From NCBI RefSeq assembly GCF_006345805.1, contig NW_021832868.1:1-64000 (forward strand): DNA of 64,000 bases, read 5' to 3'. The stretch is from Octopus sinensis. Lineage: Eukaryota. Below the pieces are notes generated by a model. The model did no database searches and was not told the origin of the DNA. It saw only the letters and a list, made by a program, of their open reading frames with translations. Both the position numbers and the translations under genes were made by a program. Positions 20,253 to 63,493 of this stretch are shown in pieces (the stretch's first letter is position 1; each line of letters opens with the position of its first letter).

Positions 20253-20612
20253 TTAGGAAGTTGTTTTAGGAGTTTCTGCAGTTTTGCGAATCATAAATCC
20301 ACCAGATAAAATAATAGCTTTCTGAGTTAATTCTTTTAATTCGTCGTCATTTCCAATTGCAACGACAATGTGACGTGGTTTAATTCTTCTTTTTCCACAT
20401 TTTACTGCTGTATTTCCAGCAAGTTCAAGCATTTCAGCCACAGCATATTCCAATACTGCGCACATATATACTGCGGCAGGAATTCCTACTCGCATTCTGG
20501 TTTCATGACGGAGACACCGGTGAATGCGTCCAACTGGAAACTGTAACCCGGCCCGAACGGATTTGCTTTTAGCCTTTGACCGTACTTTTCCTCCTTTTCC
20601 TCTTGAAGACAT
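20253..20612 (-). CDS. H2A: Histone H2A (divergent, short C-terminus)
   Basis: [41 protein letters not shown]; intact 119 aa. Confidence 0.95.
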
Positions 20613-20653
20613 TATACTCTGCTAACTATTTTTTATTTACATAATAAAAAAAA

Positions 20654-26800: not shown

Positions 26801-27192
26801 ATCGCAGGCTTCGGCATCCGAGCTGACTCGGATGCTTCCACCCGCTTTGCCGGCTTTGTCGGCGACGGCGGAACCGACCCGCTAGCAATGTGGCTCGCAG
26901 GCTTCGCCACCCAAGCGGACTTGGGAGGTTTGGCCTGCTTTGCCTGTTTGCCAGGTTGTGGAGCGGGGGCCGCGACGCTGGGGGTGCGGTGGCTTGCAGG
27001 CATCACAGGCTTCGCCACGCAAGCGGACTTGGGAGGTTTGGCCTGCTTTGCTTGTTTGCCAGGTTTTGGCGCTGGGGCCGCGACGCTAGGGGTGCGGTGG
27101 CTTGCAGGCTTCACAGGCCTCGCCACCCAAGCGGACTTGGGAGGTTTGGCCTGCTTTACCTGTTTGCCGGTTGGTTGCGCGGGGGCCGCGAC
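23813..27192 (-). mobile_element. Family A1 LINE, 5'-truncated inside ORF1
   Basis: ORF1 C-terminus with 36-aa repeats, complete ORF2, 3' UTR ending AATAAAAATTTTCC plus a short tail. Confidence 0.95.
23945..26557 (-). CDS. A1 ORF2, APE endonuclease plus reverse transcriptase (intact frame)
   Basis: MMLNIISVNARS, VVNET, GDLNAKH, GSDHLP, YRPISLL, LDIEKAFDSV, GVPQGS, YADD, YLGV. Confidence 0.93.
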   Translation of the reverse strand: MMLNIISVNARSLSGKGDPIRRMLATTSADILVVNETKLKQDRYVVDVYNCCHIPWKQGSTCGTGTSLFYKPYLALRSSGICSCSLCEFLQVRIRIGNLTFYLGAMYSKNFTACSWHVREFFGKHPKAMVVGDLNAKHHELGFRVTNAHGLALKTLVEDLGLEIRSSSEPNHIDSRGGQDWLGLALVSPGMLNWVSNTILLPDIGSDHLPLLHELREPVPQRAPGYFDLRSGSWANLERFMASRLPSLLVGNTCANIRELEALDNGINAALSDYMRDNFKQNPVQGQAHSTLPYRVLNKIRFKRRLSRLRDKCVYQENRVWFRGWISRLQREIRREIREHESSRWERACQRVDPRFPDFWKQLKSLSGRGEAKSVRLKRSDGTLASDPVEVADIFSTHLNNISGTDGSQFVETSSFVTIQEVLSWDKRCQLDISRVDAGEVSEREILAAISRSKNTAAGLDRIPMSIFKKAPPLLITALQVLFSGSLRLGMIPSRWKVAEVILIGKPEKPHDVPGGYRPISLLPAISKILERIMHQRLLEELMVAVALPEFQWGFRDGRSCGDCLWKVSSEMKNALQKSEFGMLVSLDIEKAFDSVWHDGLRSSLATCGVSPCLRRWLSGFLESRGQVVRHQGVFSKVATVLRGVPQGSVLSPTLFNIFMASAPMPVNARTEMVIYADDIILWDQSMKPECACRRLQVAVDELVNWCGSRGLKMCADKCSVLKVCKRTRGYTNFIPRLSLDGSAIAVVDRTTYLGVVFKQSGKFDDHIARTKMRAMQRLGALRAFHLRRGAWFRVFNAMVLPVLTYGVHAWHFCEDREKYVDALKKVRRRAIRLAYGLGWHDELSNAQELSLKGLPEVLEKIMTGWQVRR

Positions 27193-27317
27193 AGATGAAT
27201 TGGACGCAAGCTCAGAAGAGTTCAGTTGCCTTTGCATCAGTCTCGTCCTATCACCGTCCTTAATTCCTGTCACTTTCTCTTTCTCTGTTAATTACAATAA
27301 ACTTCATTCATTCATTC
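27193..27317 (+). mobile_element. Family C (B-related) LINE 3' end with (TTCA)n tail, 30 nt upstream of the H3 ATG
   Basis: Shares GGACG, GAAGAG.TC, GTCTCGTC and TTACAATAAA with the B 3' UTR; ends TTCATTCATTCATTC. Confidence 0.75.
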
Positions 27318-27347: not shown

Positions 27348-27758
27348 ATGGCTAGAACAAAACAAACGGCTCGAAAATCTACTGGTGCAAAAGTACCAAG
27401 GAAACAGTTGTCTGCAAAATCTGCTCTCAAGTCTGTTTCACAATTTGGAGGAGTAAAGAAACCTCATCGATTTCGACCTGGAGTTGTTGCAATGCGAGAA
27501 ATTAGACGATATCAAAAGAGCACTGATTTGTTACTACGAAAACTTCCATTCCAGAGACTCGTGAGAGAAACCGCTCAGTTTATCAAAACTGATTTGCGTT
27601 TTCAATCGTCAGCGATTGTCGCTCTCCAAAAAGCGGCAGAGAGTTACCTAGTTGGAATTTTTGAAGACAGTAATTTGTGCGCAATTCACGGAAAAAAAGT
27701 AACTATAATGCCAAACGATATGCATTTATCGAGAAGAATTCGAGGTGAAAAAACATAA
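27348..27758 (+). CDS. H3: Histone H3 (divergent, full-length)
   Basis: [58 protein letters not shown]; 136 aa. Confidence 0.96.
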
Positions 27759-27989: not shown

Positions 27990-29037
27990 CAGTGAACAAA
28001 AATAAAAACTGGACATGCTACAGTGAACAAAAATAAAATTAAAGAAGCTTGAAAAGTGGATGCCAATTTCAACTGTTTTAAATTTACCAAAACATTTACA
28101 AAAAAGGGAAATCAGTAACAGCTCAAACAATAAGAAATACCACGAAAAAATTGGTCTGAATGCATATCCACCCACGAAAAGACCACTTTTTACTAAAAAC
28201 CCTAAACTTCAATGATTAAAGCTATGCCAAACATGCAATATGCTCTCGAAATATTTTGGGAGCGAGTTATTTTAAGTGATGAAAGTAAATTTAATATGTA
28301 AAATAGTGATGTAAGAACTTTAGTATCGAGAAATCGCAAGGAAAAATATTTAACAAACAATCTTACAAAAACAGTAAAATTCGGTAAAGGAACTATCATG
28401 AACTATCATGCCATAATCAATATTGGATTTATTAATTTGGTTTTGATAAAAGAGAAGATTGGTGGAGCTTTGCATGTTAACATATTAACGAATAATATGA
28501 TCTCATTTCTGAACAAAATCAAACATAAAGATCCTAGTTTCCAACAAGACAATGATCTGAAACATACTTCGGCAATAGCAAAGAGCTTTTTTTCAAGTAA
28601 ATAATATCGAATTACTACTATGGCCAACACAAAGCCCAGATTTAAACCCTATAGATAATGTTTGGGCCTTTATTAAAGAAAAAATCAAAAGAAGAGAATT
28701 TTTGAAAAAAGAACATTTATTTGCAAAAATATCATCCATTTGGAATTAACTCAAAATAGAATACGCAAAAAGTCTTATTAATAGCATGCCAGGCCGAACA
28801 CTAGATGTAATTAGAGCTAATGGAGGATATAATGGATATTAAATAAATTTGTTCATTTTTTTGGGTTCTGAATTATCAATGAATGGAAAACCGTATAAAT
28901 ATAATATTTTTTAGACAAACTAAAAAATAAAGCAAAACTTTATTTAATGTTTTAAATCGATAGAAGTTATTTTTTAAATATTGTTTCATAGTAAATTCAT
29001 GAGAAAATGCCTTTTCAATTTTTATTTTTGTTCACTG
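27990..29037 (+). mobile_element. Tc1-like copy with internal deletion
   Basis: Both TIRs present; jumps from the left TIR to internal sequence equivalent to about 18887; otherwise near-identical to 18890-19888. Confidence 0.9.
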
Positions 29038-29287
29038 TATATATTTACTATTTTTTGGGATAATTTAGCTTAAGTAAATAAATTATATTGGACTAAAAAA
29101 TATTTTGCCAATGATAGAATAACACAGTATTGCGATATTTTATTTATAATTACTTCTAAACGTTTATTCGTTAATTGTGTTTGAAATTATTTTGAAATTC
29201 TTTAAAAAAACTTAACTGGTTGATCTATTGTATTTCGAAAACAATATTACAAAATAACAGCGCATTATTCAAATAATTAATTTAAAG

Positions 29288-29647
29288 TTAAGAAGTTGGT
29301 TTAGGAGTTTCTGCAGTTTTGCGAATCATAAATCCACCAGATGAAATAATAGCTTTCTGAGTTAATTCTTTTAATTCGTCGTCATTTCCAATTGCAACGA
29401 CAATGTGACGTGGTTTAATTCTTCTTTTTCCACATTTTACTGCTGTATTTCCAGCAAGTTCAAGCATTTCAGCCACAGCATATTCCAATACTGCGCACAT
29501 ATATACTGCGGCAGGAATTCCTACTCGCATTCGGGTTTCATGACGGAGACACCGGTGAATGCGTCCAACTGGAAACTGTAACCCGGCCCGAACGGATTTG
29601 CTTTTAGCCTTTGACCGTACTTTTCCTCCTTTTCCTCTTGAAGACAT
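29288..29647 (-). CDS. H2A: Histone H2A
   Basis: Intact, near-identical to 20253-20612; true ATG at 29645-29647. Confidence 0.95.
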
Positions 29648-29657
29648 TATACTCTGC

Positions 29658-32600
29658 GGAAAAAACATTATTAGTTAAGGGAGTTAAAAACTAACTAAGT
29701 AGACCTTCGGCATCGCTGCCTTTTCAGTCTCCATCTCACACACGCCTCCCTACACACAACCACAGGTTAAGACTTACCGCCTTACCTGCCATCCAGAAAT
29801 AATCTTCTCTAGGACCTCAGAGAGGCCTTTGAGAGATGATTCCTGGGCGTCGGAGAGCTCAGTCCGGAATCCTAAGCCATAGGCTAGCCTTATGGCTCGT
29901 CTTCTTACTTTTTTAAGCACGTCAACATGCTTATCCCTGTCCTCATAGAGGTACCAAGCGTGGACGCCATAGGTCAAGACGGGTAACACCATGGCGTTAA
30001 ACACGCGGAACCAGGCACCTCTGCTCAAGCGGAAAGCACGCAACGCACCTAATCGCTGCATTGCACGCATTTTCGTACGTGCAATGTGATCATCAAACTT
30101 ACCGGACGGCTTAAAGAGCACGCCCAAATAAGTCATCCGATCAACTGCAGCGATTGCTGACCCGCTCAGCAATAACCTAGGAACAAAATTAGTGTAACCC
30201 CTCGTCCTTTTACAGACTTTAAGGACACTGCACTTGTCCGCGCACATTCTCAGACCCCTACTCCCACACCAGTTTGCAAGTCCATCCACAGCAACCTGAA
30301 GCCTACGACACGCACACTCGGTTTCATTGAGTGATCCCAGAGGATAATGTCGTCTGCATAGATTACCATTTCAGTACGAGCATTGACTGGCATAGGCGCA
30401 GTGGCCATAAACACATTGAATAGTGTCGGACTGAGCACAGAGCCCTGAGGGACCCCGCGAAGGACTGTTGCGACTTTAGAAAAGACCCCCTGATGCCGCA
30501 CGACCTGCCTGCGAGATTCAAGAAACCCCGACAGCCAGCGCCTTAGACACGGAGAAACCCCACACGTGGCAAGGGAACTCCGGAGGCCGTCGTGCCACAC
30601 CGAGTCGAAGGCCTTTTCAATGTCGAGACTAACTAAAATACCGCATTCCCTTTTCTGGAGGGCGTTCTTCATACCAGACGACACCTTGTGAAGGCAGTCC
30701 CCGCATGAGCGGCCCTCCCTGAAGCCCCATTGGAACTCAGGGAGGGCGTCTGCAACCATCAGCTCCTCCAGGAGCCTTTGGTGCATAATTCTTTCTAGGA
30801 TTTTAGATATTGCGGGGAGCAAGGAAATGGGCCTATATCCCCCGGGGACATCATGTGGCTTCCCGGGCTTTCCGATAAGGATTACCTCAGCCACTTTCCA
30901 CCTGGAGGGAATCATCCCAAGTCGCAAGCTCCCGTTAAATAAAACCTTTAGTGCAGTGATTAACCGCGGCGGGGCCTTCTTAAAGATGGCCATCGGGATC
31001 CGATCCAAACCCGCCGCGGTGTTCTTACTTCGGGAGATTGCTGCCAGAATCTCCGCTTCAGTAATTTCGCCTGCATCGTTCCTTGATATGCCCAGCTGGC
31101 AGCGCTTGTCCCACGACAATATCTGCTGGACAGTATCAAAGGACGATGTCTCTACGAACTGACCTCCGTCAGTTCCCGAGATGCCATTGAGATGGGCTGA
31201 AAGTATTTCAACCACCTCAACCGGGTCCGAAGCGAGGTTTCCATCAGAGCGTTTAAGGCGCACTGACTTAGCCCCCCTTCTCCCCGACAGGCTCTTCAAC
31301 TGCTTCCAGAAGTCCGGAAAGCGAGGGTCCACCCTTCGGCAGGCCCTCTCCCACCGCGAACTTTCGAGTTCGCGGATTTCTCTTCGGATCTCCCTCTGAA
31401 GCCGGCTAATCCAGCCACGAAACCAAACACGGTTCTCCTCGTAAATGCATTTGTCCCGTAGTCTGGATAGCCGGCGCTTGAACCTAATTTTATTTAAGAT
31501 CCGGTGAGGGAGCGTGGAATGTGACTGACCCTGCACTGAGTTCTGTTTGAAATTATCTCGCATGTAATCAGTCAGGGCAGCATTGATTCCATTATCAAGC
31601 GCCTCCAACTCACGTATGTTGGCGCAGGTATTCCCCACCAGAAGTGAGGGCAACCTGCTGGCCATGAAACTCTCCAGGTTAGCCCAGGAACCCACCCGGA
31701 GGTCAAAGTATCCTGGGACCCTTTGAGGAACTGGCTCACGGAGTTCGTGCAATAGAGGCAGATGGTCGCTCCCAATATCGGGCAATAAAATAGTTTTACT
31801 AACCCAATTTAGAAGACCGGGACTGACCAGAGCAAGCCCTAGCCAGTCACGTCCTCCCCTCGCGTCGACGTGGTTTGGCTCGCTCGAAGTCCGGATTTCC
31901 AGCCCGAGGTCTTCAACCAGCGTCTTCAGAGCCAAACCATGCGAGTTGGTTACCCTGAAACCAAGATCTTGATGCTTGGCATTCAGGTCCCCAACAACCA
32001 TGGCCTTCGGATGCTTTTCAAAGAACTCCCGTACGTGCCAGGAGCACGCCGTAAAGTTCTTCGAGTACATCCCACCTAGGTAAAATGTTAACTCGCCTAT
32101 GCGAATTCTCACTTGGAGGAATTCACACAAGCTACATGAACATATACCTGGACTCTGCAAGGCAAGGTAGGGCTTGTAGAAGAGGCTAGTTCCTGTGCCA
32201 CATATTGACCCCTGTTTCCAGGGTATGTGACGACAGTTGTAGCCATCAACTACGTACGGACCCCCCTTTACCTTCGTTTCGTTGACCACCAGAATGTCCG
32301 CACTCGTGGTGGCCAACATCCTCTGAACGGCGTCCCTTTTTCCTTCCAAGGAACGCGCGTTCACCGATATGATGTTGAGCATCATATCGGTTCTTCGCCA
32401 AGGATCTTCTTGGCCTCGGCAACGTTGCAGTGTAGCATTTCCTCTACACTGCAATTCATCTCCCTACAAAATTTTAATAGGGAAACGCATAATTGCACCG
32501 CAGGACTAATACTGTCCTGCGGTACACGCTCGCCAGGGGCTGAGTGCAATGGCATCTCCACGTATGGAGGACGCCTTTTCAGCCCCAGGTTGTGCCGGAC

Positions 32601-34221
32601 GGCGCCGCCGTTAGCCGCCTCAGAAGGCATTGCCGGCTTAGGCAACCAAGCGGACTCGGAAGCTTTCACCTGCTTTGCCAACTTTGTCGGCGAAGGCTGC
32701 ACCGACCCACACGTAGCATGGCTCACAGGTTCCACTGTCTTCGCCACCCAAACGGATTTGGAAGGTTTGGCCAGTATCGCCTGCTTGCCAGGTTTTGGCG
32801 CAGGGTGCGCGACGCGACGCGGGCGACTTACTGTTGGGATTACATCCCCACCTACCTTTCGGGTTGCCTCCTTGAACTTGGGGCAACCTCTGAAGTTGGC
32901 AGTGTGTCCCAACTTACCACAGTTGACACACTGCCTCTCCTTGGATGGTGAGGGGCACGTCTTGCGACCATGCTCCCCACCGCAAATAAGGCACTTCGCC
33001 TTATCCGGGCACTTTGTGGAGATGTGCCCGAACCCCTGACACCGAAAGCATTGGGTGGCTTTCGGGCGGGGCCAGGCAGCTCTCATCCTAATGTAGCCGA
33101 TCCTAGTACCCAGAAGTACTAGGCGCTCGGCTTCCGCAGGAGATCCCAGGATGACCTCCACCACTTCAAGAGGGCGGTTACCCTGCTTGAAGCGTGCAAG
33201 GGCAGAGGCACTGGGGTACTCCCGCTGTATGTGTCCTAAAAGGTCATTATCCTCGAAGTCCCGGGGGACCCCGAGGAGCAGGACTCTTACCTGCCTTACC
33301 TTTTGTTCAATCCTGACAAGCCGATGCATGCCAGGACCGAACGGGCTGGACTTCTCCAGCTCTCCTTTAAAGCTGAAGAAGTCCTCCTCCTTCTCCCACC
33401 CAAGCAGGAATTGGGTGGGCTCCCTCTTCAGGACTCTATACAGCTTTGAAGGCTGGATAGAGTCTAACGTACCTAAGATCTTTATGACCGAGGCCTTCCC
33501 ACTTGTAGGGAGGACCTCAAGTCGTGCCACAGCACCGAAGGTAATTCTGCCCCCGGCGCCAGTGGTCTTCTTTGGGTGTGCATCCACCTGATCGGACACA
33601 CACCCAGTACCTAAAACATTAGGGGGGGTTGGACGGCCAGCCGCACGTTTGGGTTTCCCCACCGTGTACCAACCGTCCTCAAGGGCAACCTTATTTCCTG
33701 CCGTACCCACCGGACGGCCTCAGGAGACGACACCCTGTTGGCATTAATTGACTTACCTAGGCTGGGTTTGGCACCACTAGACAAACCGCAAACACGTGGC
33801 GAACCAGCATGCTGTGCGGTTGTCGTGGCTACCAAACAATTAGTACCTGTTGCAGCTGCTGCTCCCCCGACACCAGCCAAAGGGGCAGCAGAGGAGAAGA
33901 GTCTTCAGTGAGTGCTGAACCCATCTGGGAGGGTCCAGGCTTCGACCTCCTGCTTTGACCTAAAGAATTAAAAACACCACTAGAATAGCCGGAAGCACGT
34001 GGCGGTGAACCACGGCTCCGGCAGTTCATCGTAGTGGCACACTGAACCGTCTTGTCCTCCGGGGAGTGCGAAGCGGGAACGCCTCCACTTCTGCATAGTC
34101 TTCTTAGTGCAGACAGCTTGCGAGCAGATTTTGCAGACAACTGTTTCCTTGGTACTTTTGCACCAGTAGATTTTCGAGCCGTTTGTTTTGTTCTAGCCAT
34201 ATTTTTTTTTTATTTCAGACA
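29658..34221 (-). mobile_element. Family A2 LINE, full-length, starting with the H3 5' UTR plus codons 1-28; 3' end 10 nt upstream of the H2A ATG
   Basis: ORF1 32382-33710 (three CCHC knuckles), ORF2 to 29774 with one frameshift near 30320, 3' end TAATGTTTTTTCC joined to GCAGAGTATA-ATG. Confidence 0.93.
34117..34200 (-). other. H3: H3 N-terminal tail segment (M-A1..K27) fused to A2 ORF1
   Basis: [28 protein letters not shown], then element sequence LSALRRLCRSGGV. Confidence 0.93.
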
Positions 34222-34225
34222 GGAC

Positions 34226-35038
34226 CTATGCCAAACATGCAATATGCTCTCGAAATATTTTGGGAGCGAGTTATTTTAAGTGATGAAAGTAAATTTAATA
34301 TGTAAAATAGTGATGTAAGAACTTTAGTATCGAGAAATCGCAAGGAAAAATATTTAACAAACAATCTTACAAAAACAGTAAAATTCGGTAAAGGAACTAT
34401 CATGAACTATCATGCCATAATCAATATTGGATTTATTAATTTGGTTTTGATAAAAGAGAAGATTGGTGGAGCTTTGCATGTTAACATATTAACGAATAAT
34501 ATGATCATTTCTGAACAAAATCAAACATAAAGATCCTAGTTTCCAACAAGACAATGATCTGAAACATACTTCGGCAATAGCAAAGAGCTTTTTTTCAAGT
34601 AAATAATATCGAATTACTACTATGGCCAACACAAAGCCCAGATTTAAACCCTATAGATAATGTTTGGGCCTTTATTAAAGAAAAAATCAAAAGAAGAGAT
34701 TTTTGAAAAAAGAACATTTATTTGCAAAAATATCATCCATTTGGAATTAACTCAAAATAGAATACGCAAAAAGTCTTATTAATAGCATGCCAGGCCGAAC
34801 ACTAGATGTAATTAGAGCTAATGGAGGATATAATGGGTATTAAATAAATTTGTTCATTTTTTTGGGTTCTGAATTATCAATGAATGGAAAACCGTATAAA
34901 TATAATATTTTTTAGACAAACTAAAAAATAAAGCAAAACTTTATTTAATGTTTTAAATCGATAGAAGTTATTTTTTAAATATTGTTTCATAGTAAATTCA
35001 TGAGAAAATGCCTTTTCAATTTTTATTTTTGTTCACTG
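34226..35038 (+). mobile_element. Tc1-like 3' part (within a 1.43-kb duplication)
   Basis: Near-identical to 28222-29037; right TIR present. Confidence 0.9.
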
Positions 35039-35287
35039 TATATATTACTATTTTTTGGGATAATTTAGCTTAAGTAAATAAATTATATTGGACTAAAAAA
35101 TATTTTGCCAATGATAGAATAACACAGTATTGCGATATTTTATTTATAATTACTTCTAAACGTTTATTCGTTAATTGTGTTTGAAATTATTTTGAAATTC
35201 TTTAAAAAAACTTAACTGGTTGATCTATTGTATTTCGAAAACAATATTACAAAATAACAGCGCATTATTCAAATAATTAATTTAAAG

Positions 35288-35646
35288 TTAAGAAGTTGGT
35301 TTAGGAGTTTCTGCAGTTTTGCGAATCATAAATCCACCAGATGAAATAATAGCTTTCTGAGTTAATTCTTTTAATTCGTCGTCATTTCCAATTGCAACGA
35401 CAATGTGACGTGGTTTAATTCTTCTTTTTCCACATTTTACTGCTGTATTTCCAGCAAGTTCAAGCATTTCAGCCACAGCATATTCCAATACTGCGCACAT
35501 ATATACTGCGGCAGGAATTCCTACTCGCATTCGGGTTTCATGACGGAGACACGGTGAATGCGTCCAACTGGAAACTGTAACCCGGCCCGAACGGATTTGC
35601 TTTTAGCCTTTGACCGTACTTTTCCTCCTTTTCCTCTTGAAGACAT
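35288..35646 (-). pseudogene. H2A: Histone H2A with a 1-nt deletion (possibly a sequencing error)
   Basis: Matches 29288-29647 except for a missing C near 35550. Confidence 0.88.
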
Positions 35647-35814
35647 TATACTCTGCTAACTATTTTTTGTTTACATAATAAAAAAATGGCATTCCGAAAT
35701 TTCGTTGAAGATTTTTTTCGGAATGGTCCTTTTTTGCATCAGTCGAAAAAAATTTGGCAATGATACTTTTTTTGCATAGGTTGAAAATAGTGTTTATTTA
35801 GAGAATTTTTCCTA
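35647..35814. promoter_or_regulatory. Bidirectional H2A/H4 promoter region
   Basis: 168 bp between divergent ATGs; inverted CATTCCGAA (35690) and TTCGGAATG (35717); AATGATACTTTTTTTGCAT. Confidence 0.7.
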
Positions 35815-35964
35815 ATGTCTGGACGTGGTAAAGGTGGCAAAGGAGGAAAGAGTGGTGCAAAACGATTTCGAAAGATATTAATTGACAATATACAAGGAAT
35901 TACTAAGCCAGCAATAAGAAGACTATGTCGAAGAGGAGGTGTTCGAAGAATTTCTGGAAAAATT
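35815..35964 (+). other. H4: Histone H4 codons 1-50 fused to the A1 5' end
   Basis: MSGRGKGG...[18 protein letters not shown], then [10 protein letters not shown] instead of YEETR. Confidence 0.93.
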
Positions 35965-36254
35965 CATGCAATTACAAGACTGTCTCGAGGAGGACCTCTT
36001 CCCAACGAAAAGGTTCCTGATGCGGACGGTTGGCATACCGTGGGGAAACCCAAACGTGTTGCCAGCCGTTTTTAATAGTTTAGGTACTGGGTGTGTGTCT
36101 GCGCAGGTAGATGCACACCCAAAGAAGACTGCTCGCGCCGGGGGTAGAATTACCTTCGGCGTGGTGGCTAGAGAGGTCTAGTGGCCTCGGGCAAAAAGGC
36201 CTCGGTCATAAAGATCCTGGGGACGCTTGACTCTATACAGCCATCTAGGCGGTA
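35965..36254 (+). mobile_element. Family A1 5' end (ORF1 N-terminus)
   Basis: [26 protein letters not shown] and KILGTLDSIQPSR match A2 ORF1 and overlap the A1 ends at 43255 and 47720. Confidence 0.88.
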
Positions 36255-37247
36255 TGACTCGAATGAAGTTCGTTTTATTGACTCGACAGAAAAATTCGGA
36301 AATTATAGCATTTCTTAAGGATGGTGAAATGCCAGATGAAGTGACTCAGAATCAGAATGAGTCAAATTTCAGGAGAACGGCATCATTATTCAGATTGTCG
36401 GACTCCAAAAATGACATTTTTTACTTCAAAACTTCGGGAATCTTACTACGTACCTTTGCTCTCGAGGAAGTAGAAGAAAAGAAACTTTTTATTGAAAATC
36501 TCCATTTAAAAAATGGACATCCAGGTCAAGACAAGCTGCTTTTTCTCCTTAAAGATACTGTTTATGGGTCTTGTCGGAATGAGGTTATGTCAGTCCTCAA
36601 ATCATGCTGCCAATGTCAGGCGAGAAAGCTTATGAACACCAGACCTGTAATTAAGCCAATAAGAGCCTATAGCGTGAGAGAAAGGTATCACTATTCAGTC
36701 TAATGTTAGATATATTTTTGATCTAATCGATTTACGTCATTATGCTCATGAGAACGAAAATTACGCGTGGCTTTTGGTTGGCCTCGATTCATTCTCAAAG
36801 TTTTGTTGGACGTCACCGTCATTGTCCAAATCAGCTATGGAAGTGTCTAAAGCAATAAATAAAATAATATTAATTTTTGGAAAACCATTAATTCTTCATA
36901 TGGACAATGGGAAGGAATTTGTCAACGAAAGGATTTCCCGATTGTGCGATGAGTACAAGATAAAGCACGTGAGAGGTCGTGCAAGGTGCCCTTGGGTGCA
37001 GGGGCAGATGGAAAGACTAAACCAATCTCTGAAATATATGTTGTCCTCCACCTGTTTGTCTGAAAACCTCTATTATAAATGGATTTCGATTATAGACCGG
37101 ATAACCAGTTCATATAACTCACCCATTTGGCAACTCGATGCAATAGAATGCATAATTCCGAGTAAACAAGGCGACATAACGAAATTGTTAAATGCATACA
37201 CATGCACCTATGCAGAAAATTTGGATTCAAAAAATCAAAAAGGTTAA
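36255..37247 (+). mobile_element. Ginger/KRBA2-type DDE integrase with a predicted 25-nt intron (36685-36709)
   Basis: LHLKNGHPG...CCQC (HHCC); spliced ERYIFDLIDL, LDSFSKF, LHMDNGKEF, QGQMERLNQSLK. Confidence 0.85.
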
Positions 37248-38892: not shown

Positions 38893-39197
38893 TTATCCAC
38901 CAAATCCGTAAATTGTCCTACCTTGACGTTTCAAGGCATTAACAACGTCCATTGCGATAACAGTTTTTCTTTTGGCATGCTCAGTGTAAGAAATACAATC
39001 ACGAACAGTTTGCTCAATAAAAATCTTAAGGACAGAACGTGTCTCCTCGTAAATTTTTCCAGAAATTCTTCGAACACCCCCTCTTCGACATAGTCTTCTT
39101 ATTGCTGGCTTAGTAATTCCTTGTATATTGTCAATTAATATCTTTCGAAATCGTTTTGCACCACTCTTTCCTCCTTTGCCCCTTACCACGTCCAGAC
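38893..39197 (-). pseudogene. H4: Histone H4, full body with small indels at the start (ATG damaged)
   Basis: [14 protein letters not shown]...TEHAKRKTV...[13 protein letters not shown]; the A1 3' end lies about 19 nt upstream. Confidence 0.9.
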
Positions 39198-42200: not shown

Positions 42201-43255
42201 TCGCAGGCTTCGGCATCCGAGCTGACTCGGATGCTTCCACCCGCTTTGCCGGCTTTGTCGGCGACGGCGGAACCGACCCGCTAGCAATGTGGCTAGCAGG
42301 CTTCGCCACCCAAGCGGACTTGGGAGGTTTGGCCTGCTTTGCCTGTTTGCCAGGTTGTGGAGCGGGGGCCGCGACGCTGGGGGTGCGGTGGCTTGCAGGC
42401 ATCACAGGCTTCGCCACGCAAGCGGACTTGGGAGGTTTGGCCTGCTTTGCTTGTTTGCCAGGTTTTGGCGCTGGGGCCGCGACGCTAGGGGTGCGGTGGC
42501 TTGCAGGCTTCACAGGCCTCGCCACCCAAGCGGACTTGGGAGGTTTGGCCTGCTTTACCTGTTTGCCGGTTGGTTGCGCGGGGGCCGCGACGCTAGGGGG
42601 GCGACTTACCTTCGGGATTACATCCCCACCAACCTGTCGGGTTGCCTCCTTGAACTTACGACAACCCTTGAAGTTGGCAGTGTGTCCTAACTTACCACAG
42701 TTGACACACTGCCTCACCATAGGTGGTGAGGGGCATGTCTTGCGATCATGCTTCCCACCGCAGATTAGGCATTTCGCCTTCTCCGGACACTTCGTGCTTA
42801 TGTGTCCGAACCCCTGACACCGAAAGCATTGGGTGGCTTTCGGGCGGGGCCGGACAGCACGAAGCCTGACGTAGCCGATCCTAGTACCCAGAAGTACTAG
42901 GCGCTCGGCTTCCGCAGGAGATCCCAGGATGACCTCCACCACTTCAAGAGGGCGGTTACCCTGCTTGAAGCGTGCAAGGGCAGAGGCACTGGGGTACTCC
43001 CGCTGTATGTGTCCTAAAAGGTCATTATCCTCGAAGTCCCGGGGGACCCCGAGGAGCAGGACTCTTACCTGCCTTACCTTTCGTTCAATCCTGACAAGCC
43101 GATGCATGCCAGGACCGAACGGGCTGGACTTCTCCAGCTCTCCTTTAAAGCTGAAGAAGTCCTCCTCCTTCTCCCACCCAAGCAGGAATTGGGTGGGCTC
43201 CCTCTTCAGGACTCTATACCGCCTAGATGGCTGTATAGAGTCAAGCGTCCCCAGG
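39217..43255 (-). mobile_element. Family A1 LINE, 5'-truncated, intact ORF2 (39344-41956) and most of ORF1
   Basis: 870-aa ORF2; ORF1 with three CCHC knuckles and three 36-aa repeats; 3' end joined to ATTTAGAGAATTTTTCCTA upstream of H4. Confidence 0.96.
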
Positions 43256-48588: not shown

Positions 48589-48792
48589 GATTGTTTTGCT
48601 TGTGACACGTGTCGGATTATAACTTTGTTAATGTTCCTACGGAATGTATTATAATAATAATTTCCTCATGACATTAACTAATTTATAACTTTCCGTTTAC
48701 TTATTGTTTTATTTATTAAGAAATATTTTAATTATCTACTATTACAAATTATCCTCTCAAAAAATTCGGAATGCTACTTTTAAAAAAATTTT

Positions 48793-51700
48793 GGAAATAA
48801 AAAAAAATGGCTAGAACAAAACAAACGGCTCGAAATCTACTGGTGCAAAAGTACCAAGGAAACAGTTGTCTGCAAAATCTGCTCGCAAGCTGTCTGCACT
48901 AAGAAGACTATGCAGAAGTGGAGGCGTTCCCGCTTCGCACTCCCCGGAGGACAAGACGGTTCAGTGTGCCACTACGATGAACTGCCGGAGCCGTGGTTCA
49001 CCGCCACGTGCTTCCGGCTATTATGTGGTGTTTAATTCTTTAGGTCAAAGCAGGAGGTCGAAGCCTGGACCCTCCCAGATGGGTTCAGCACTCACTGAAG
49101 ACTCTTCTCCCTCTGCTCCCCCTTTGGCTGGTGTCGGGGGAGCAGCAGCTGCAACAGGTACTAATTGTTTGGTAGCACGACAACCGCACAGCATGCTGGT
49201 TCGCCACGTGTTTGCGGTTTGTCTAGTGGTGCCAAACCCAGCCTAGGTAAGTCAATTAATGCCAACAGGGTGTCGTCTCCTGAGGCCGTCCCGGTGGGTA
49301 CGGCAGGAAATAAGGTTGCCCTTGAGGACGGTTGGTACACGGTGGGGAAACCCAAACGTGCGGCTGGCCGTCCAACCCCCCCTAATGTTTTAGGTACTGG
49401 GTGTGTGTCCGATCAGGTGGATGCACACCCAAAGAAGACCACTGGCGCCGGGGGCAGAATTACCTTCGGTGCTGTGGCACGACTTGAGGTCCTCCCTACA
49501 AGTGGGAAGGCCTCGGTCATAAAGATCTTAGGTACGTTAGACTCTATCCAGCCTTCAAAGCTGTATAGAGTCCTGAAGAGGGAGCCCACCCAATTCCTGC
49601 TTGGGTGGGAGAAGGAGGAGGACTTCTTCAGCTTTAAAGGAGAGCTGGAGAACAGCCCGTTCGGTCCTGGCATGCATCGGCTTGTCAGGATTGAACAAAG
49701 GTAAGGCAGGTAAGAGTCCTGCTCCTCGGGGTCCCCCGGGACTTCGAGGATAATGACCTTTTAGGACACATACAGCGGGAGTACCCCAGTGCCTCTGCCC
49801 TTGCACGCTTCAAGCAGGGTAACCGCCCTCTTGAAGTGGTGGAGGTCATCCTGGGATCTCCTGCGGAAGCCGAGCGCCTAGTACTTCTGGTACTAGGATC
49901 GGCTACATTAGGATGAGAGCTGCCTGGCCCCGCCCGAAAGCCACCCAATGCTTTCGGTGTCAGGGGTTCGGGCACATCTCCACAAAGTGCCCGGATAAGG
50001 CGAAGTGCCTTATTTGCGGTGGGGAGCATGGTCGCAAGACGTGCCCCTCACCATCCAAGGAGAGGCAGTGTGTCAACTGTGGTAAGTTGGGACACACTGC
50101 CAACTTCAGAGGTTGCCCCAAGTTCAAGGAGGCAACCCGAAAGGTAGGTGGGGATGTAATCCCAACAGTAAGTCGCCCGCGTCGCGTCGCGCGCCCTGCG
50201 CCAAAACCTGGCAAGCAGGCGATACTGGCCAAACCTTCCAAATCCGTTGGGTGGCGAAGACAGTGGAACCGTGAGCCATGCTACGTGTGGGTCGGTGCAG
50301 CCTTCGCCGACAAAGTTGGCAAAGCAGGTGAAAGCTTCCGAGTCCGCTTGGTTGCCTAAGCCGGCAATGCCTTCTGAGGCGGCTAACGGCGGCGCCGTCC
50401 GGCACACCTGGGGCTGAAAAGGCGTCCTCCATACGTGGAGATGCCATTGCACTCAGCCCCTGGCGAGCGTGTACCGCAGGACAGTATTAGTCCTGCGGTG
50501 CAATTATGCGTTTCCCTATTAAAATTTTGTAGGGAGATGAATTGCAGTGTAGAGGAAATGCTACACTGCAACGTTGCCGAGGCCAAGAAGATCCTTGGCG
50601 AAGAACCGATATGATGCTCAACATCATATCGGTGAACGCGCGTTCCTTGGAAGGAAAAAGGGACGCCGTTCAGAGGATGTTGGCCACCACGAGTGCGGAC
50701 ATTCTGGTGGTCAACGAAACGAAGGTAAAGGGGGGTCCGTACGTAGTTGATGGCTACAACTGTCGTCACATACCCTGGAAACAGGGGTCAATATGTGGCA
50801 CAGGAACTAGCCTCTTCTACAAGCCCTACCTTGCCTTGCAGAGTCCAGGTATATGTTCATGTAGCTTGTGTGAATTCCTCCAAGTGAGAATTCGCATAGG
50901 CGAGTTAACATTTTACCTAGGTGGGATGTACTCGAAGAACTTTACGGCGTGCTCCTGGCACGTACGGGAGTTCTTTGAAAAGCATCCGAAGGCCATGGTT
51001 GTTGGGGACCTGAATGCCAAGCATCAAGATCTTGGTTTCAGGGTAACCAACTCGCATGGTTTGGCTCTGAAGCGCTGGTTGAAGACCTCGGGCTGGAAAT
51101 CCGGACTTCGAGCGAGCCAAACCACGTCGACGAGGGGGAGGGGACGTGACTGGCTAGGGCTTGCTCTGGTCAGTCCCGGTCTTCTAAATTGGGTTAGTAA
51201 AACTATTTTATTGTCCGATATTGGGAGCGACCATCTGCCTCTATTGCACGAACTCCGTGAGCCAGTTCCTCAAAGGGTCCCAGGATACTTTGACCTCCGG
51301 GTGGGTTCCTGGGCTAACCTGGAGAGTTTCATGGCCAGCAGGTTGCCCTCACTTCTGGTGGGGAATACCTGCGCCAACATACGTGAGTTGGAGGCGCTTG
51401 ATAATGGAATCAATGCTGCCCTGACTGATTACATGCGAGATAATTTCAAACAAACTCAGTGCAGGGTCAGGCACATTCCACGCTCCCTCACCGGATCTTA
51501 AATAAAATTAGGTTCAAGCGCCGGCTATCCAGACTACGGGACAAATGCGTTTACGAGGAGAACCGTGTTTGGTTTCGTGGCTGGATTAGCCGGCTTCAGA
51601 GGGAGATCCGAAGAGAAATCCGCGAACTCGAAAGTTCGCGGTGGGAGAGGGCCTGCCGAAGGGTGGACCCTCGCTTTCCGGACTTCTGGAAGCAGTTGAA

Positions 51701-53346
51701 GAGCCTGTCGGGGAGAAGGGGGGCTAAGTCAGTGCGCCTTAAACGCTCTGATGGAACCCTCGCTTCGGACCCGGTTGAGGTGGTTGAAATACTTTCAGCC
51801 CATCTCAATGGCATCTCGGGAACTGACGGAAGTCAGTTCGTAGAGACATCGTCCTTTGATACTGTCCAGCAGATATTGTCGTGGGACAAGCGCTGCCAGC
51901 TGGGCATATCAAGGAACGATGCATGCAGGCGAAATTACTGAAGCGGAGATTCTGGCAGCAATCTCCCGAAGTAAGAACACCGCGGCGGGTTTGGATCGGA
52001 TCCCGATGGCCATCTTTAAGAAGGCCCCGCCGCGGTTAATCACTGCACTAAAGGTTTTATTTAACGGGAGCTTGCGACTTGGGATGATTCCCTCCAGGTG
52101 GAAAGTGGCTGAGGTAATCCTTATCGGAAAGCCCGGGAAGCCACATGATGTCCCCGGGGGATATAGGCCCATTTCCTTGCTCCCCGCAATATCTAAAATC
52201 CTAGAAAGAATTATGCACCAAAGGCTCCTGGAGGAGCTGATGGTTGCAGACGCCCTCCCTGAGTTCCAATGGGGCTTCAGGGAGGGCCGCTCATGCGGGG
52301 ACTGCCTTCACAAGGTGTCGTCTGGTATGAAGAACGCCCTCCAGAAAAGGGAATGCGGTATTTTAGTTAGTCTCGACATTGAAAAGGCCTTTGACTCGGT
52401 GTGGCACGACGGCCTCCGGAGTTCCCTTGCCACGTGTGGGGTTTCTCCGTGTCTAAGGCGCTGGCTGTCGGGTTTCTTGAATCTCGCAGGCAGGTCGTGC
52501 GGCATCAGGGGGTCTTTTCTAAAGTCGCAACAGTCCTTCGCGGGGTCCCTCAGGGCTCTGTGCTCAGTCCGACACTATTCAATGTGTTTATGGCCACTGC
52601 GCCTATGCCAGTCAATGCTCGTACTGAAATGGTAATCTATGCAGACGACATTATCCTCTGGGATCACTCAATGAAACCGGAGTGTGCGTGTCGTAGGCTT
52701 CAGGTTGCTGTGGATGGACTTGCAAACTGGTGTGGGAGTAGGGGTCTGAGAATGTGCGCGGACAAGTGCAGTGTCCTTAAAGTCTGTAAAAGGACGAGGG
52801 GTTACACTAATTTTGTTCCTAGGTTATTGCTGAGCGGGTCAGCAATCGCTGCAGTTGATCGGATGACTTATTTGGGCGTGCTCTTTAAGCCGTCCGGTAA
52901 GTTTGATGATCACATTGCACGTACGAAAATGCGTGCAATGCAGCGATTAGGTGCGTTGCGTGCTTTCCGCTTGAGCAGAGGTGCCTGGTTCCGCGTGTTT
53001 AACGCCATGGTGTTACCCGTCTTGACCTATGGCGTCCACGCTTGGTACCTCTATGAGGACAGGGATAAGCATGTTGACGTGCTTAAAAAAGTAAGAAGAC
53101 GAGCCATAAGGCTAGCCTATGGCTTAGGATTCCGGACTGAGCTCTCCGACGCCCAGGAATCATCTCTCAAAGGCCTCTCTGAGGTCCTAGAGAAGATTAT
53201 TTCTGGATGGCAGGTAAGGCGGTAAGTCTTAACCTGTGGTTGTGTGTAGGGAGGCGTGTGTGAGATGGAGACTGAAAAGGCAGCGATGCCGAAGGTCTAC
53301 TTAGTTAGTTTTTAACTCCCTTAACTTATAATGTTTTTTTTTCCCC
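48793..53346 (+). mobile_element. Family A2 LINE, full-length second copy with the same H3 5' fusion; 3' end inserted in B ORF1
   Basis: H3 ATG at 48807, junction AAG-CTGTCTGCA identical to 34117; many homopolymer frameshifts; 3' TAATGTTTTTTTTTCCCC then CACCAATTTGG. Confidence 0.92.
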
Positions 53347-56300
53347 CACCAATTTGGACAATTTGGACACACGTCCAATTTGGACACACGTCCCATAAGT
53401 GCACCGAAAAAGTTCGTTGCTTGGTCTGTGGTGGCGAACACCGACACAATAGGTGTCCGAACTCAGACCCCAGACCAAATGACCCTGCTGTCAAGACCTG
53501 CATAAACTGCAACAGTCCTGGACACTGGGCATGTTACGGTGGATGCCCACTCGCCAAAGCCGCGTCTGCAGCCTTACGGGCTGTGAGAAATCCGCCGGCC
53601 AGCAACCCAGCTCGCTGGGTGAAAGCCGAACGCACAGAGTCGATCTGGACAAAGAGGCCAGTTGTGAATCCGATCAAGACTGATGTCTGCATTCAGACAT
53701 CGGCGGACTCCGACTTTGATTTTAAACTCGACCCGAAGCCGACGGCTGACTCTTGTTCCAGTACCAGAGCTGGCCGCACGGCTGCTGCTCGCAAGAAGAC
53801 AAACACCCCTCCAGACAATATCTCATCGCAAAGAGGTGCCCTCTCGGACGAAGACCTGCACAACAGAGACTCCCTTATGGAATTCTTTCATCGTTGTGTG
53901 GGAGCTCTAACCAAACTTGGTGTGGAACCTGAGGTGCTGCAACGGCTCCTATTAGAGGGGAGCACGCCAGCAAAATAGCCCCAGTCAAAATCATCGCTGT
54001 GAATGCCCGATCTATCAAGAGACGGCACCAGGACTTCGTTGAGATGGTAAACAGCGGCCATCCAGACATTATTGTCGTCAACGAGTCTAAGCTCAAAGAA
54101 AACCACTCGTACGAACTTCCGGGCTACCGGTCAGTGGACCTAAAATGGGGAAGCTGCTCTACGCCAGGGACTGGCTCGAGCATCTTCTACGCCGAAAACC
54201 TCCAAATCCGTAACCTCACCATCATCGAGAGCACGGTGTGCGAATTCCTCTCTCTTGAGGTGAAAACTGATTCCTTCTGGATAAAGGTCGGTGGAATATA
54301 TTGCAAATATCTCCCCCCCTGCATCAGATTGATTGACGAATTCTTCTCAAGCACAGCTCATTGCTTCTTATCGGAGACTTAAACTCGAAGCACACGGCGT
54401 TTGGATGTCGGTTAACCAACCAAGATGGTCGAACACTGAAGAAGGTCACTGACAAGCTTGGTATTTTCGTCAGGACATCCGAAGACCCGAACCACCACTC
54501 GCCCTTTGGCGGGGACAACCTGTGCCTGTGCATCTGTTCTCACTCTGTCGCTAACCTTATGGAAAAGCCTACAGTCCTTGACGATATCGGAAGTGACCAC
54601 CTACCAATGGAGATCAAAATTCACACTAGCATTGTTAGACAAGAACACATTTCCTCTCACTACAATCTCTCAAAGATCAACTGGCCACACTACAGGAGCT
54701 CCATAAGTGCATTCCTGCATGACAACGGTCGCCCTGTTGGGTATAACTCAGCCCTCGACATCGACTCCGCAAGCGATAAGCTAAGCAAATTCATGCTTCA
54801 GTATCTAACGTCGTACGGAGAATTGTCAAGTGCAGACCGCGCACGGAGGACCACTCTGAGCGTGAAAGTGAAGATCATCCTCAACGAAAGGAAGCGGCTG
54901 AGAAATAAACTCAAACGCTGTGTGGACCCAGCTGACAGGGGAAGACTTAGGAACATGATCTCGGAAATTGGTTATAAGGTCCACGTCGCGACAAAGCTGG
55001 AAGCAGCCAGGAAATGGCAGAAGGCTTGTCAAAACCGACTACAGAAACCCAAATTTCTGGGACTGTTTCCACAAAGTGGCTAACCTCGAAGGAAAATCCT
55101 CACCCCGAGGTTGTGCAACCAGTCTGGTATGCCCGCCTCGCCACAAGAGATGCCAACATATTTGCAGAACACCTGGCCACTATCCAGGAGGCCAATCCGG
55201 AAACGTCGCAAAACCGGGAGTCGGAGCCACTGCCGCGCCCACTGTCGCCGGACCATCACCCGATCACCATTGCAGAGGTGACCTGGGCCATCCGTTCGTC
55301 AAAAGGCAACGCACCGGGCCATGACAAAATACCGATGCGATTGTTTAAGGAAGCACCCGAAGACCTACATGTGTTCCTCGCGGATCTGTTTACGGCAAGT
55401 CTCAAATGGGGCCATGTGCCGGAAAAATGGAAAATCTCAGAGGTCCGGATGATCAAAAAGCCTGCGAAACCGGTGAATCTCGCTAGCAGCTACCGTCCCA
55501 TAAGCCTAATCCCAACTATCTCAAGGCTGATGGAGAAAATTATGGCCAAGCGCCTCGACTTCCACGCCGAAGAGAAGAAAGTGCTGCTCCCGCAGCAATG
55601 GGGTTTTCGCTCTGGACGTAGCTGCGGTGACTGTTTCATTACGGTACAGTCCACCATCTCGAGAGCAACGGAGTTTAAAGAAACTTTATCTCTTGTATGT
55701 CTGGACATCTCAAAGGCTTTTGACAGCGTCTGGCACAGAGACCTCCTGGAAAGGATCGAACTCTGTGAGCCAACAGCGGAAGTCTTCCTCTGGATGCGCT
55801 GCTTCCTCTCAAATCGCTACTCTTTTATCTCTGAGTCGGGCTTCTTCTCAAGATATATTTCGCTCCGAAGGGGGGTTCCGCAGGGGTCCTGTCTCAGCCC
55901 AATCTTTTTCAATTTGGTAATGAGCAGTTTCCCCACACCCTCCGATCCCAGGACATCCCTACTCCTCTACGCGGACGATGTTCTCGTTCTGGACACCTCG
56001 ATGGACACCAATGCCTCGGAGAAACGACTTGCCGGCTACATTGAGGAGATAAAGAATTGGTGCATTGGTAAGCGACTCTCGCTGGCCATGGACAAATCTG
56101 CATATCTCCAAATTAACCCAAGAAAGTCGCAAGATCGCAAACCCGGCTCTTTGGTGGAAATTGCTCGCCCTGAGAGCATACGTTACCTGGGGCTCACAAT
56201 CGACGCAAACTCGAGATACCATTTGCATTTCAAACGGAGAAAAGGGAAAGCCATCGCCGCTCTCCGACTCCTAAGAAGCATGCACTTGAATACAAATACC

Positions 56301-56717
56301 TTCCTATTTGTATACCATGCAACAATCTTGCCCAGCCTACTGTATGGTATGGAAGCTTGGTTCTACTCGAAACAATATGAGAAAATTCTGCGAAAATGCG
56401 AAAAAATACGGAGATACGCTCTAAAACTAGCCTATATGCTAAATCCATGGGAGCCTGTCCCAAGCTGGGCGGAGAGCAAGTCTCCAGAGCTACGGCAGGC
56501 CATCGAGGCTTCTATCCGAACTTTTCGGAAACGCTCTAAAGTAACTGACCTATTCATCGATCGTGGAGAATAGCAGGTGTCCCTGCTCATAGACAGACAA
56601 AGCGGACGAACCATGGAAGAGCTCGAATGCCCAAAGCAATCGTCTCGTCAAAATTACTTTCCGCACTAATTTTCTGTCTCGCTCTTCTTTCTTACAATAA
56701 AATTCTTCGTTCGTTCG
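53347..56717 (+). mobile_element. Family B LINE (ORF1 3' half, ORF2, 3' UTR, (TTCG)n tail), 20 nt upstream of H2B
   Basis: Zinc knuckles, APE and RT motifs; tail TTCGTTCGTTCG, then AATATACAAATTTTGTTAAT and the H2B start. Confidence 0.94.
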
Positions 56718-56737
56718 AATATACAAATTTTGTTAAT

Positions 56738-63395: not shown

Positions 63396-63404
63396 TCGTA
63401 TATT

Positions 63405-63493
63405 GTAATTCCTTGTATATTGTCAATTAATATCTTTCGAAATCGTTTTGCACCACTCTTTCCTCCTTTGCCACCTTTACCACGTCCAGACAT
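63405..63493 (-). pseudogene. H4: Histone H4 codons 1-30 joined to the REL element
   Basis: [30 protein letters not shown]; the A1 3' end lies 19 nt upstream. Confidence 0.9.

Follow-up and report, generated by a model that had tools for sequence, protein, structure and literature searches.

The histone-variant locus of Octopus sinensis

We analysed a 64,000-nucleotide (nt) stretch of Octopus sinensis DNA (the window; positions 1-64000 of contig VCDQ01007429.1, assembly GCA_006345805.1) that contains divergent core-histone variant genes and, between them, two copies of a long interspersed nuclear element (LINE) subfamily, A2, whose first open reading frame (ORF1) is preceded by the leader, start codon and N-terminal tail of a histone H3 variant. 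Genes of the histone-variant cluster lie at 14499-15030, 20253-20612, 27348-27758, 29288-29647, 35288-35646, 38893-39189, 47812-48116 and 56737-57100. The variants are 58% (H2A), 76% (H3) and 77% (H4) identical to their canonical counterparts, and an H2B variant is present as well; the H2A variant is annotated as 'H2A-beta, sperm-like'. Similar clusters occur on at least five O. sinensis contigs, and four additional O. sinensis contigs with comparable histone clusters were retrieved by using the H2A variant as query. The gene at 27348-27758 (plus strand), an intact H3 variant of 136 amino acids, represents the type of gene that donated leader and tail to A2. AATAAA follows soon after the stop codon of the H3- and H4-variant genes, and an Rfam scan of the window returned neither the histone 3' stem-loop nor any other family.

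The remaining sequence of the window is made up of transposons, comprising several LINE families, Tc1- and pogo-like DDE fragments and one integrase. Against a background of approximately 33-37% GC, the GC-rich islands are LINEs. The strong divergence of the histones had raised the idea that the contig derives from a parasite contaminant. This was rejected, as LINEs of the related subfamily A1 also lie beside an octopus Ferlin gene on another contig, and several O. sinensis contigs carry annotated histone variants.

Two A2 copies begin with an H3 leader and tail

Copy 1 lies on the minus strand at 34216..29660 and copy 2 on the plus strand at 48794..53339; their alignment of 4,566 nt shows 99.1% identity. 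Both open with an H3-variant leader, the ATG and tail residues 1-27, then pass through the junction AAG/CTGTCTGCA into ORF1, continuing beyond the H3 tail with CTGTCTGCACTAAG. The H3 segment is 97.8% identical to the resident H3-variant gene (27348-27758) over nt 1-89, and an H3-variant allele on contig L007 matches residues 1-28 of copy 1 identically. Lysines K4, K9, K14, K18, K23 and K27 are all kept, in agreement with the earlier note on this DNA, which had described the fusion as bearing these six residues.

In copy 1, all parts of which lie on the minus strand, a leader of approximately 24-26 nt from an H3-variant mRNA (34201..34226, ending ..GGTCCTGTCTGAAATAAAAAAAAAAT) was delimited by alignment with the upstream regions of the H3-variant and H3-like genes and forms the 5' terminus of the mobile unit; a Tc1-like (DDE_3) repeat lies upstream of it. 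The H3 ATG and tail residues 1-27 (34117..34200) are followed by the junction CTGTCT and an H4-derived relic, ALRRLCRSGGV (34078..34116), and by a low-complexity linker of approximately 130 codons with private 1-nt deletions at 33895 and 33714 (33681..34077). ORF1 proper (32382..33680) comprises an EDGWYTVGKPKR motif, an RRM-like middle, three CCHC knuckles (Pfam zf-CCHC), a C-terminal region and the stop codon. ORF2 (29774..32386), whose ATG overlaps the ORF1 stop and which has a single 1-nt deletion at 30320, encodes an apurinic/apyrimidinic endonuclease (APE) and a reverse transcriptase (RT); Pfam finds Exo_endo_phos or Exo_endo_phos_2 and RVT_1 in ORF2 of both A2 and A1. The element ends in the 3' tail CTTAACTAATAATGTTTTTTCC (29658..29679), without poly(A), 10 nt upstream of the ATG of the H2A-variant gene at 29647-29288. 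The form of this A-type tail, CTTAACT(A/T)ATAA..T(n)C(n), is conserved.

Copy 2, including its tail, spans 48794..53347 on the plus strand, with the leader at about 48794-48806, the H3 codons at 48807-48889, junction and H4 relic at 48890-48928 and the 3' tail at 53320-53347. It lies directly behind an H2B-variant promoter; on contigs L007 and L008 this flank is followed immediately by the H2B-variant leader and gene. In the window, a 5'-truncated LINE of a different family, B (53348..56716, plus strand), stands between the tail of copy 2 and the H2B-variant leader (ATG near 56737). A promoter motif, TTCGGAATG, lies at 48765..48773 (plus strand), 42 nt upstream of the copy 2 ATG. The more general motif TTCGGAATR occurs nine times in the window (9423, 9466, 35690, 35717, 43753, 48765, 57515, 57551 and 57574) against 1.5 expected, and seven of the nine sites lie approximately 40-110 nt upstream of histone-variant starts, the pair at 9423 and 9466 not being histone-upstream. 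We regard it as a candidate promoter element of the histone-variant family.

Judged by its predicted domains, A2 is an autonomous APE-type LINE, that is, a non-LTR (long terminal repeat) retrotransposon. Pfam finds no Histone domain in the reconstructed 606-amino-acid ORF1, and the tblastn match to H3 covers only residues 1-28; the predicted ORF1 product thus has the tail of H3 without being a histone. Tandem monomers in the A2 linker were considered and dropped, the only trace being a single 30-nt internal match.

The H3 piece travels with the element

The exact H3/A2 junction is also present on contigs L006 (18478, plus strand) and L008 (1667, minus strand), giving four copies on three contigs. 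Each has its own 5' flank: a Tc1-like repeat for copy 1, the H2B-variant promoter for copy 2, the tail of another A2 in head-to-tail arrangement on L006, and a region downstream of the H2B variant on L008. The leaders reach to about -26 (copy 1), -16 (copy 2), -18 (L006) and -9 (L008) nt. Four different flanks with variable leader lengths are the pattern expected of LINE 5' ends and establish that the H3 piece belongs to the element. The 3' neighbours differ too, copy 1 abutting the H2A-variant gene and copy 2 the 5'-truncated LINE.

Copy 1 is surrounded by 1,436-bp direct repeats that are 99.6% identical, with one substitution and four indels. The upstream unit (34226..35656) holds an H2A-variant gene with its promoter, and the downstream unit (28222..29657) an H2A-variant gene without promoter plus a Tc1-like fragment. 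On one side the duplication ends at the first base of the H3 leader, on the other at the 3' tail; being flush with both ends of copy 1, it indicates that the mobile unit begins at the H3 leader. A third copy of the duplicated sequence, at about 20565-20665, represents the uninterrupted (empty) site. The length of this target-site duplication, which starts 10 nt before the H2A-variant ATG, is one to two orders of magnitude above that usual for LINEs.

For copy 2, no target duplication could be demonstrated. An 8-bp sequence, AAATTTTG, found on both sides of the composite of copy 2 and the B element was rejected as such, since the native promoter and gene on L007 and L008 have both octamers 50 nt apart.

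The earlier note had claimed that both copies share an identical junction despite different 5' flanks and 3' insertion sites, and had deduced that the H3 piece travels with the element. The first claim is confirmed, and the second is now borne out by the same junction in four copies on three contigs, by their unrelated 5' flanks and by a duplication that ends at the leader.

The H3 tail is in frame with ORF1 in the reconstructed element

Copies 1 and 2 differ by 16 substitutions and 18 indel events, whereas 30-41 substitutions and 1-3 indels separate the A1 copies of a pair within this contig, so that the indel:substitution ratio is approximately 1:1 for the A2 pair versus 1:30 for the A1 pairs. 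Compared with the A1 pairs, the excess of indels in the A2 pair appears regional and resembles consensus error; long-read errors may explain it. The single-base homopolymer indels reported in the earlier note are present at the sites it gave: copy 1 is without one C at 33895 and one at 33714, and copy 2 has deletions at CGAAAA (48832/48833; base kept in copy 1 at 34174) and GCCA (49175/49176; copy 1 33828), among approximately 12. Its description was nevertheless too narrow, as the A2 indels also include a 3-nt GTC deletion and a 4-nt ATGC duplication.

When the longer allele is chosen at each indel, regardless of its effect on the frame, the result is one ORF of 606 amino acids from the H3 ATG to the ORF1 stop. 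The two ORF1 deletions of copy 1 are private, the base being present in three of the four copies once L006 and L008 are included. Over the 438 nt from K27 to the EDGWY motif there are no stop codons in the linking frame and five and nine in the other two; in a first-order Markov simulation the probability that the linking frame would be open was 0.0046. The progenitor ORF2, assembled from the copy 1 alleles with one 1-nt correction, is an open frame of 896 amino acids, and copy 1 has three frameshifts in total.

The four copies fall into two sublineages (copies 1 and 2 versus L006 and L008) that are about 4% apart, with 67-71 substitutions in 1.68 kb that are patchily placed, which suggests recombination. 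With private indels settled by parsimony, using the other sublineage as reference, both sublineage consensuses are open from the H3 ATG through ORF1, the L006/L008 consensus (lineage B) having an in-frame 6-nt insertion. Between sublineages the ratio of non-synonymous to synonymous substitution rates (dN/dS) is 0.21 for ORF1 residues 175-380 (22 synonymous and 15 non-synonymous differences) and 0.62 for the linker; for the ORF1 core of A2 versus that of A4, a related subfamily described below, it is 0.26. The ORF1 core is under purifying selection. Together with the open consensuses, this indicates that the H3-led element spread as a working element. Neither the H3 codons nor residues 381-549 differ between sublineages, and the dN/dS comparison of the H3 segment that had been proposed, when run across the four copies, met zero substitutions and gave no estimate.

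The earlier expectation of a consensus with one continuous frame is thus upheld by the 606-amino-acid ORF and by two sublineages, approximately 4% apart, that are both open. That the ORF1 protein is encoded as an H3-tail fusion is supported at the DNA level by these open frames, by selection on the ORF1 core and by a parallel, intact fusion to H4.

An older H4 relic and parallel H4 captures

The sequence after K27 had been taken to be simply A2. Instead, A2 nt 91-124 are 82-85% identical (blastn) to nt 95-128 of the H4 variant, and the encoded ALRRLCRSGGV corresponds to H4 residues 33-43 in the H4 reading frame and has Cys, as in the local H4 variant, where canonical H4 has Ala. The H4 part of the A4 fusion can be aligned with the relic as well. 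As read from these alignments, the A2 5' end is an H3 piece stacked upon the remnant of an older H4 piece.

Captures of H4 were found in two further subfamilies. In A3, the H4-variant promoter, leader and codons 1-50 are in frame with the 5' region of an A-family ORF1 (35826..36255, plus strand; ..GKI/..), in a fragment that is broken at 36255. In A4, H4-variant residues 1-53 are in frame with ORF1 on three contigs: L005 (1672-3213), L007 (8826, minus strand) and L010 (7898). The L005 copy has an intact ORF1 of 513 amino acids as assembled, followed by an ORF2 that is broken once. The H4 fusion junction reads ..IYEER/KKKPGPSHVGSALTGDSSSSAGNK.., that of the H3 fusion ..SAR/K-LSALR... The H4 ATG is the sole ATG before the conserved DGW motif in A3; in A4 there is one other, which overlaps M1-S2 and opens a 9-codon out-of-frame ORF. 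AITRLSRGG in A3 is a possible second H4 relic, although its alignments are ambiguous.

Dead junctions between histone genes and LINEs occur as well. At 63400..63491 (minus strand), an H4-variant leader and codons 1-30 run out of frame into an RT-truncated LINE from a different family, and the ATG of this H4-variant fragment has an A1 tail 20 nt upstream of it. On L005 (about 17980-18192, minus strand), H4-variant residues 1-71 are joined to an RT-truncated A element.

The canonical state of the family

An exhaustive HMMER search identified 8,454 ORF1 relatives, aligned over residues ~270-420. The histone-tail motif is absent from the best 150 of these, and the nearest octopus relatives have ordinary N-termini. 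(A protein query with the whole of ORF1, H3 tail included, gave matches dominated by H3 proteins, and a search with the ORF2 protein found relatives of only approximately 25% identity.) A2 ORF1 combines zf-CCHC with an RRM-like region homologous to known ORF1 proteins, as is typical of the Jockey superfamily. A canonical A1 element on L003, a contig without histone genes where it lies beside the Ferlin gene, has its own ATG and 38 amino acids before the DGW motif: MVVFPVMRKNDNLKAEKRGAKPSRTEGDVVEPAQVAHEDGWRTVGKPKR. The missing tail in the best 150 relatives and the ATG of canonical A1 together imply that histone-led 5' ends are a derived state restricted to this family.

Directly upstream of the native ORF1 ATG of this A1 element, L003 7756-9295 consists of 9.1 tandem 169-bp monomers, an array that resembles the monomer-type 5' untranslated region of mouse L1. 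No target duplication that would prove the array to belong to the element was found at L003. Within the C-terminal part of A1 ORF1, 108-bp tandem repeats (26892-27204, 42294-42603 and 46857-47169) encode units of the form ..KPPKSAWVAKPV.PASHRTPSVAAPAP.PGKQAKQA..; fragments of this repeat region carry the RefSeq names 'vegetative cell wall protein gp1-like' and 'DKFZp434B061-like'.

LINEs insert at the 5' ends of histone-variant genes

Of 15 listed A-type 3' tails, some of them duplicates, 10-11 have a same-strand histone ATG 10-85 nt downstream, against a chance expectation that we estimate at approximately 1% per junction. The distance from tail to ATG is characteristic of the histone type (10 nt for H2A, 20-21 nt for H4, about 22 nt for H2B and 18-85 nt for H3), and the same position recurs in independent events with different tails. 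Two other LINE families behave alike: B lies before the H2B variant, and the 3' end of a B-like fragment lies 33 nt upstream of the ATG of the H3-variant gene at 27348-27758. Taken together, tails of A, B and B-like elements precede histone starts in sense orientation at 29658, 39218, 43787, 56716, 27313 and 63514 in the window, and at L005 5910 and 7068, L007 8872, 9965 and 12539, and L006 18452. LINE-LINE and LINE-histone units form head-to-tail chains at histone 5' ends.

Site specificity is not strict, as the four histone targets share no obvious sequence and A1 is also found at non-histone sites (window 23812; L003). On these distributions, the A-family LINEs have a strong regional preference rather than strict site specificity, and this tendency to insert at histone 5' ends explains how histone fusions arise. 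In H3-like paralogues a TATAAA box at -52..-47 predicts a transcription start site (TSS) near -27..-21, and the longest leader reaches -26; the boundary marked by the tails is probably the TSS.

A fragment of approximately 22 nt resembling an A2 3' tail, TTATATAATGTTTTTCCCCTCC, lies between the H2B-variant promoter and leader on L008 (about 2330-2350, minus strand) and L007 (about 5380-5400, minus strand), the same spot that copy 2 and the B element occupy in the window. It could have been inserted in extremely 5'-truncated form or be what is left of an insertion that was deleted.

Origin and role of the histone-led 5' end

We think it probable that serial 5' transduction from histone promoters built the A2 5' end. 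An element would integrate in sense orientation with its 3' tail at the 5' end of a histone-variant gene, and its 5' junction would often fall downstream of this point, creating a long target duplication. The copy would thereby come to lie behind a histone promoter, with the leader and initial codons of the gene in front of it and its 5' end sometimes within the histone coding region. Where the junction was in frame and the element full-length, a chimeric RNA of leader, N-terminal codons and LINE could retrotranspose as a unit, and repeated cycles with slight 5' truncation would stack H3 over H4. The present element RNA would start with approximately 9-26 nt of H3-variant leader and have the H3 start codon as its first ATG, and its frame would run from H3 tail residues 1-27 through the 11-residue H4 relic (33-43) and the linker of about 130 residues to ORF1 proper. 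The captured piece would replace the leader and start codon that the canonical relative supplies itself. Use of the histone promoter and translation from the H3 ATG are what this arrangement predicts. More speculatively, integration may begin where the template strand of a transcribed histone gene is nicked, with RT extending that strand along the nascent RNA to its 5' end and then jumping to the LINE RNA; this route would account for tails that abut the TSS, for sense orientation and for long duplications from TSS to nick.

The most likely added role of the tail would be nuclear import, as a nuclear localization signal (NLS): the NLSs designated in budding yeast span residues 1-28 of H3 and 1-34 of H4 (PMC5677370). 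Histone mimicry or tethering by the tail is conceivable from its sequence. A more ambitious proposal, which we consider unlikely, is that the tails are adaptive and that the LINE has specialised on the histone-variant cluster, integrating at histone TSSs, borrowing their promoters and directing its ribonucleoprotein either into the pathway of histone import and chaperones or back to the histone loci, in a self-reinforcing homing cycle.

Several observations weigh against serial transduction and a functional tail. A founder locus with H3 promoter, H3 5' piece, A2, and H3 leader and gene in succession was not found in the approximately 150 kb examined; copy 2 has the H2B-variant promoter, not an H3 promoter, in front of it, and the H4::A3 fragment does lie behind the native H4-variant promoter. 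All four H3::A2 copies are frameshifted as assembled, so the open frame is a reconstruction, and the material consists of unplaced long-read contigs of one assembly, read as DNA. The linker is weakly constrained (dN/dS 0.62), and in-frame internal ATGs in A2 (M57 and M93) could act as starts. The TSS positions are predicted from TATA spacing and recurrent boundaries. Finally, zero substitutions in the H3 codons of the four copies, combined with patchily placed divergence, mean that selection on the tail cannot be inferred.

The H3 tail could be a neutral passenger of 5' transduction, with a start at the H3 ATG being fortuitous or with translation mainly from an internal ATG; we hold this to be rather unlikely. 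The internal in-frame ATGs at residues 57 and 93 and the linker dN/dS fit such a passenger, as do the short N-terminus of canonical A1, the lack of a histone tail in the best 150 of 8,454 ORF1 relatives, and the out-of-frame and RT-truncated histone/LINE junctions, which form regardless of use. It sits poorly with four independent in-frame captures in full-length lineages (H4 to the A2 ancestor, H3 to A2, H4 to A4 and H4 to A3), with a frame that is open over 174 codons in two sublineages, and with the H4 ATG being the only in-frame start before DGW in A3 and A4; moreover, the captured pieces span the yeast NLS regions nearly (H3 1-27 of 1-28) or fully (H4 1-34). A different origin for the first H3/A2 junction, in our judgement rather unlikely, is template switching, in which RT, having reached the 5' terminus of a slightly truncated, H4-led A2 RNA, would jump to an H3-variant mRNA at about nt 84-90 and copy it to the cap. 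This would explain why the leader starts at the predicted H3 mRNA start and why a founder locus with an H3 promoter is missing from the sequence examined, and it is in keeping with a possible CTGT microhomology at the junction and with head-to-tail joints of an A2 tail to an H3 leader (L006) and of an A2-type tail to an H4 leader (L007). However, the internal acceptor positions (H3 +84; H4 +89, +148, +156 and +213) are unlike end-to-end jumping, the H4::A3 fragment of the window stands behind its native H4-variant promoter as integration into a resident gene predicts, and copy 1 shows that long duplications from a histone 5' end occur.

That the copies are segmental duplicates or a homogenised array of one dead H3-gene insertion, or assembly artefacts, with an immobile H3 piece, is very improbable and has been largely refuted. 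Although the region is rich in segmental repeats and the unplaced long-read contigs have many indels, the four 5' flanks and leader lengths differ, as do the 3' flanks, the boundaries of the copy 1 duplication coincide with the ends of the unit, there are two sublineages with purifying selection on ORF1, and no remainder of an H3 gene follows any 3' end. Serial 5' transduction from histone promoters remains our preferred account of the A2 5' end.

Relation to known elements

Human SVA-F1 carries MAST2 exon 1, and 5' transductions by L1 are also known. A2 resembles these in that host first-exon sequence, probably from the host TSS, was copied with the element, is enclosed by the target duplication and gave rise to a subfamily with a shared junction. 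Unlike them, the A2 piece is coding and in frame with the element's own ORF1, at least four captures occurred, the donors are histone genes, the element is autonomous, and the native leader and start were replaced. Other LINEs exploit host transcription through specific targets: R1 and R2 in ribosomal DNA, TRAS and SART in telomeric repeats, NeSL and CRE in spliced-leader genes, and Dictyostelium TRE5 upstream of tRNA genes. The A family shares with them recurrent sense insertions at one position of a multicopy family, head-to-tail stacking and the probable use of host promoters. It differs from them in lying at the 5' ends of four histone genes without a shared target being seen, in occupying non-histone sites as well, and in duplications of up to 1,436 bp.

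The ORF1 core is that of the Jockey superfamily, and a D-G-(P)-W-x-T-V..K-K-P-R motif lies near the native N-terminus of the relatives, the N-terminal region being a variable module. We know of no Jockey-superfamily ORF1 that has been reported with a histone tail. Chimeric retrocopies of the U6/L1 type arise by RT template switching. A2 is similar to these in its head-to-tail RNA-derived units, one of which starts exactly at a predicted RNA 5' end, but its junction is inherited, being identical in four copies, and the internal acceptor positions misfit end-to-end jumping. Among parasite proteins, the ARSK tail of influenza NS1 is a case of histone mimicry. As with NS1, an H3-tail-like sequence in the A2 protein could potentially be read or modified by host chromatin machinery; unlike the convergent 4-residue motif of NS1, the A2 tail is a true gene-derived 27-residue H3 N-terminus.

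In the literature that we searched there was no precedent for a histone-tailed retrotransposon protein, a histone-gene-specific LINE or a retrotransposon histone mimic; within that literature, a LINE ORF1 with a captured H3 or H4 first-exon tail is previously undescribed. LINEs must keep re-inventing their 5' ends, a process mostly deduced from ancient events and here caught in the act: one young family displays the canonical form with monomers and its own ATG, derived in-frame histone-led forms, and dead by-products. Should the tails prove functional, the ORF1 product would be the first Gag-like protein of a transposon to carry a true histone tail, making parasite use of histone import, modification and chaperone pathways testable. 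Insertion at the 5' ends of four histone genes with kilobase duplications points to integration tied to the TSS and informs target choice by non-LTR elements. The 'sperm-like' histone-variant clusters of octopus are, moreover, a LINE nest in which several annotated proteins are LINE ORF1 fragments.

Other features of the window

The large inverted repeats of the window have different centres, which excludes a palindromic read artefact. Integrase_H2C2 and rve domains, of an LTR-retroelement- or Ginger-type integrase, occupy 36227-37247 and start exactly at the H4::A3 break (36255). Here 20 nt, TACAGCCATCTAGGCGGTAT, overlap with the 5' end of the inverted A1 element at 47720, which hints at a rearrangement.

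The H2A variant has its nearest named non-octopus relative, at 71% identity, on a 2.2-kb contig of the ant Vollenhovia emeryi, which may reflect contamination or mis-assignment. An 821-amino-acid ORF at 20823-23288 has RVT_1 after a weak, sub-threshold PHD-finger match (19.1 bits versus a cut-off of 28). It lies directly behind an H2A-variant promoter region and represents another retroelement family at a histone 5' region.

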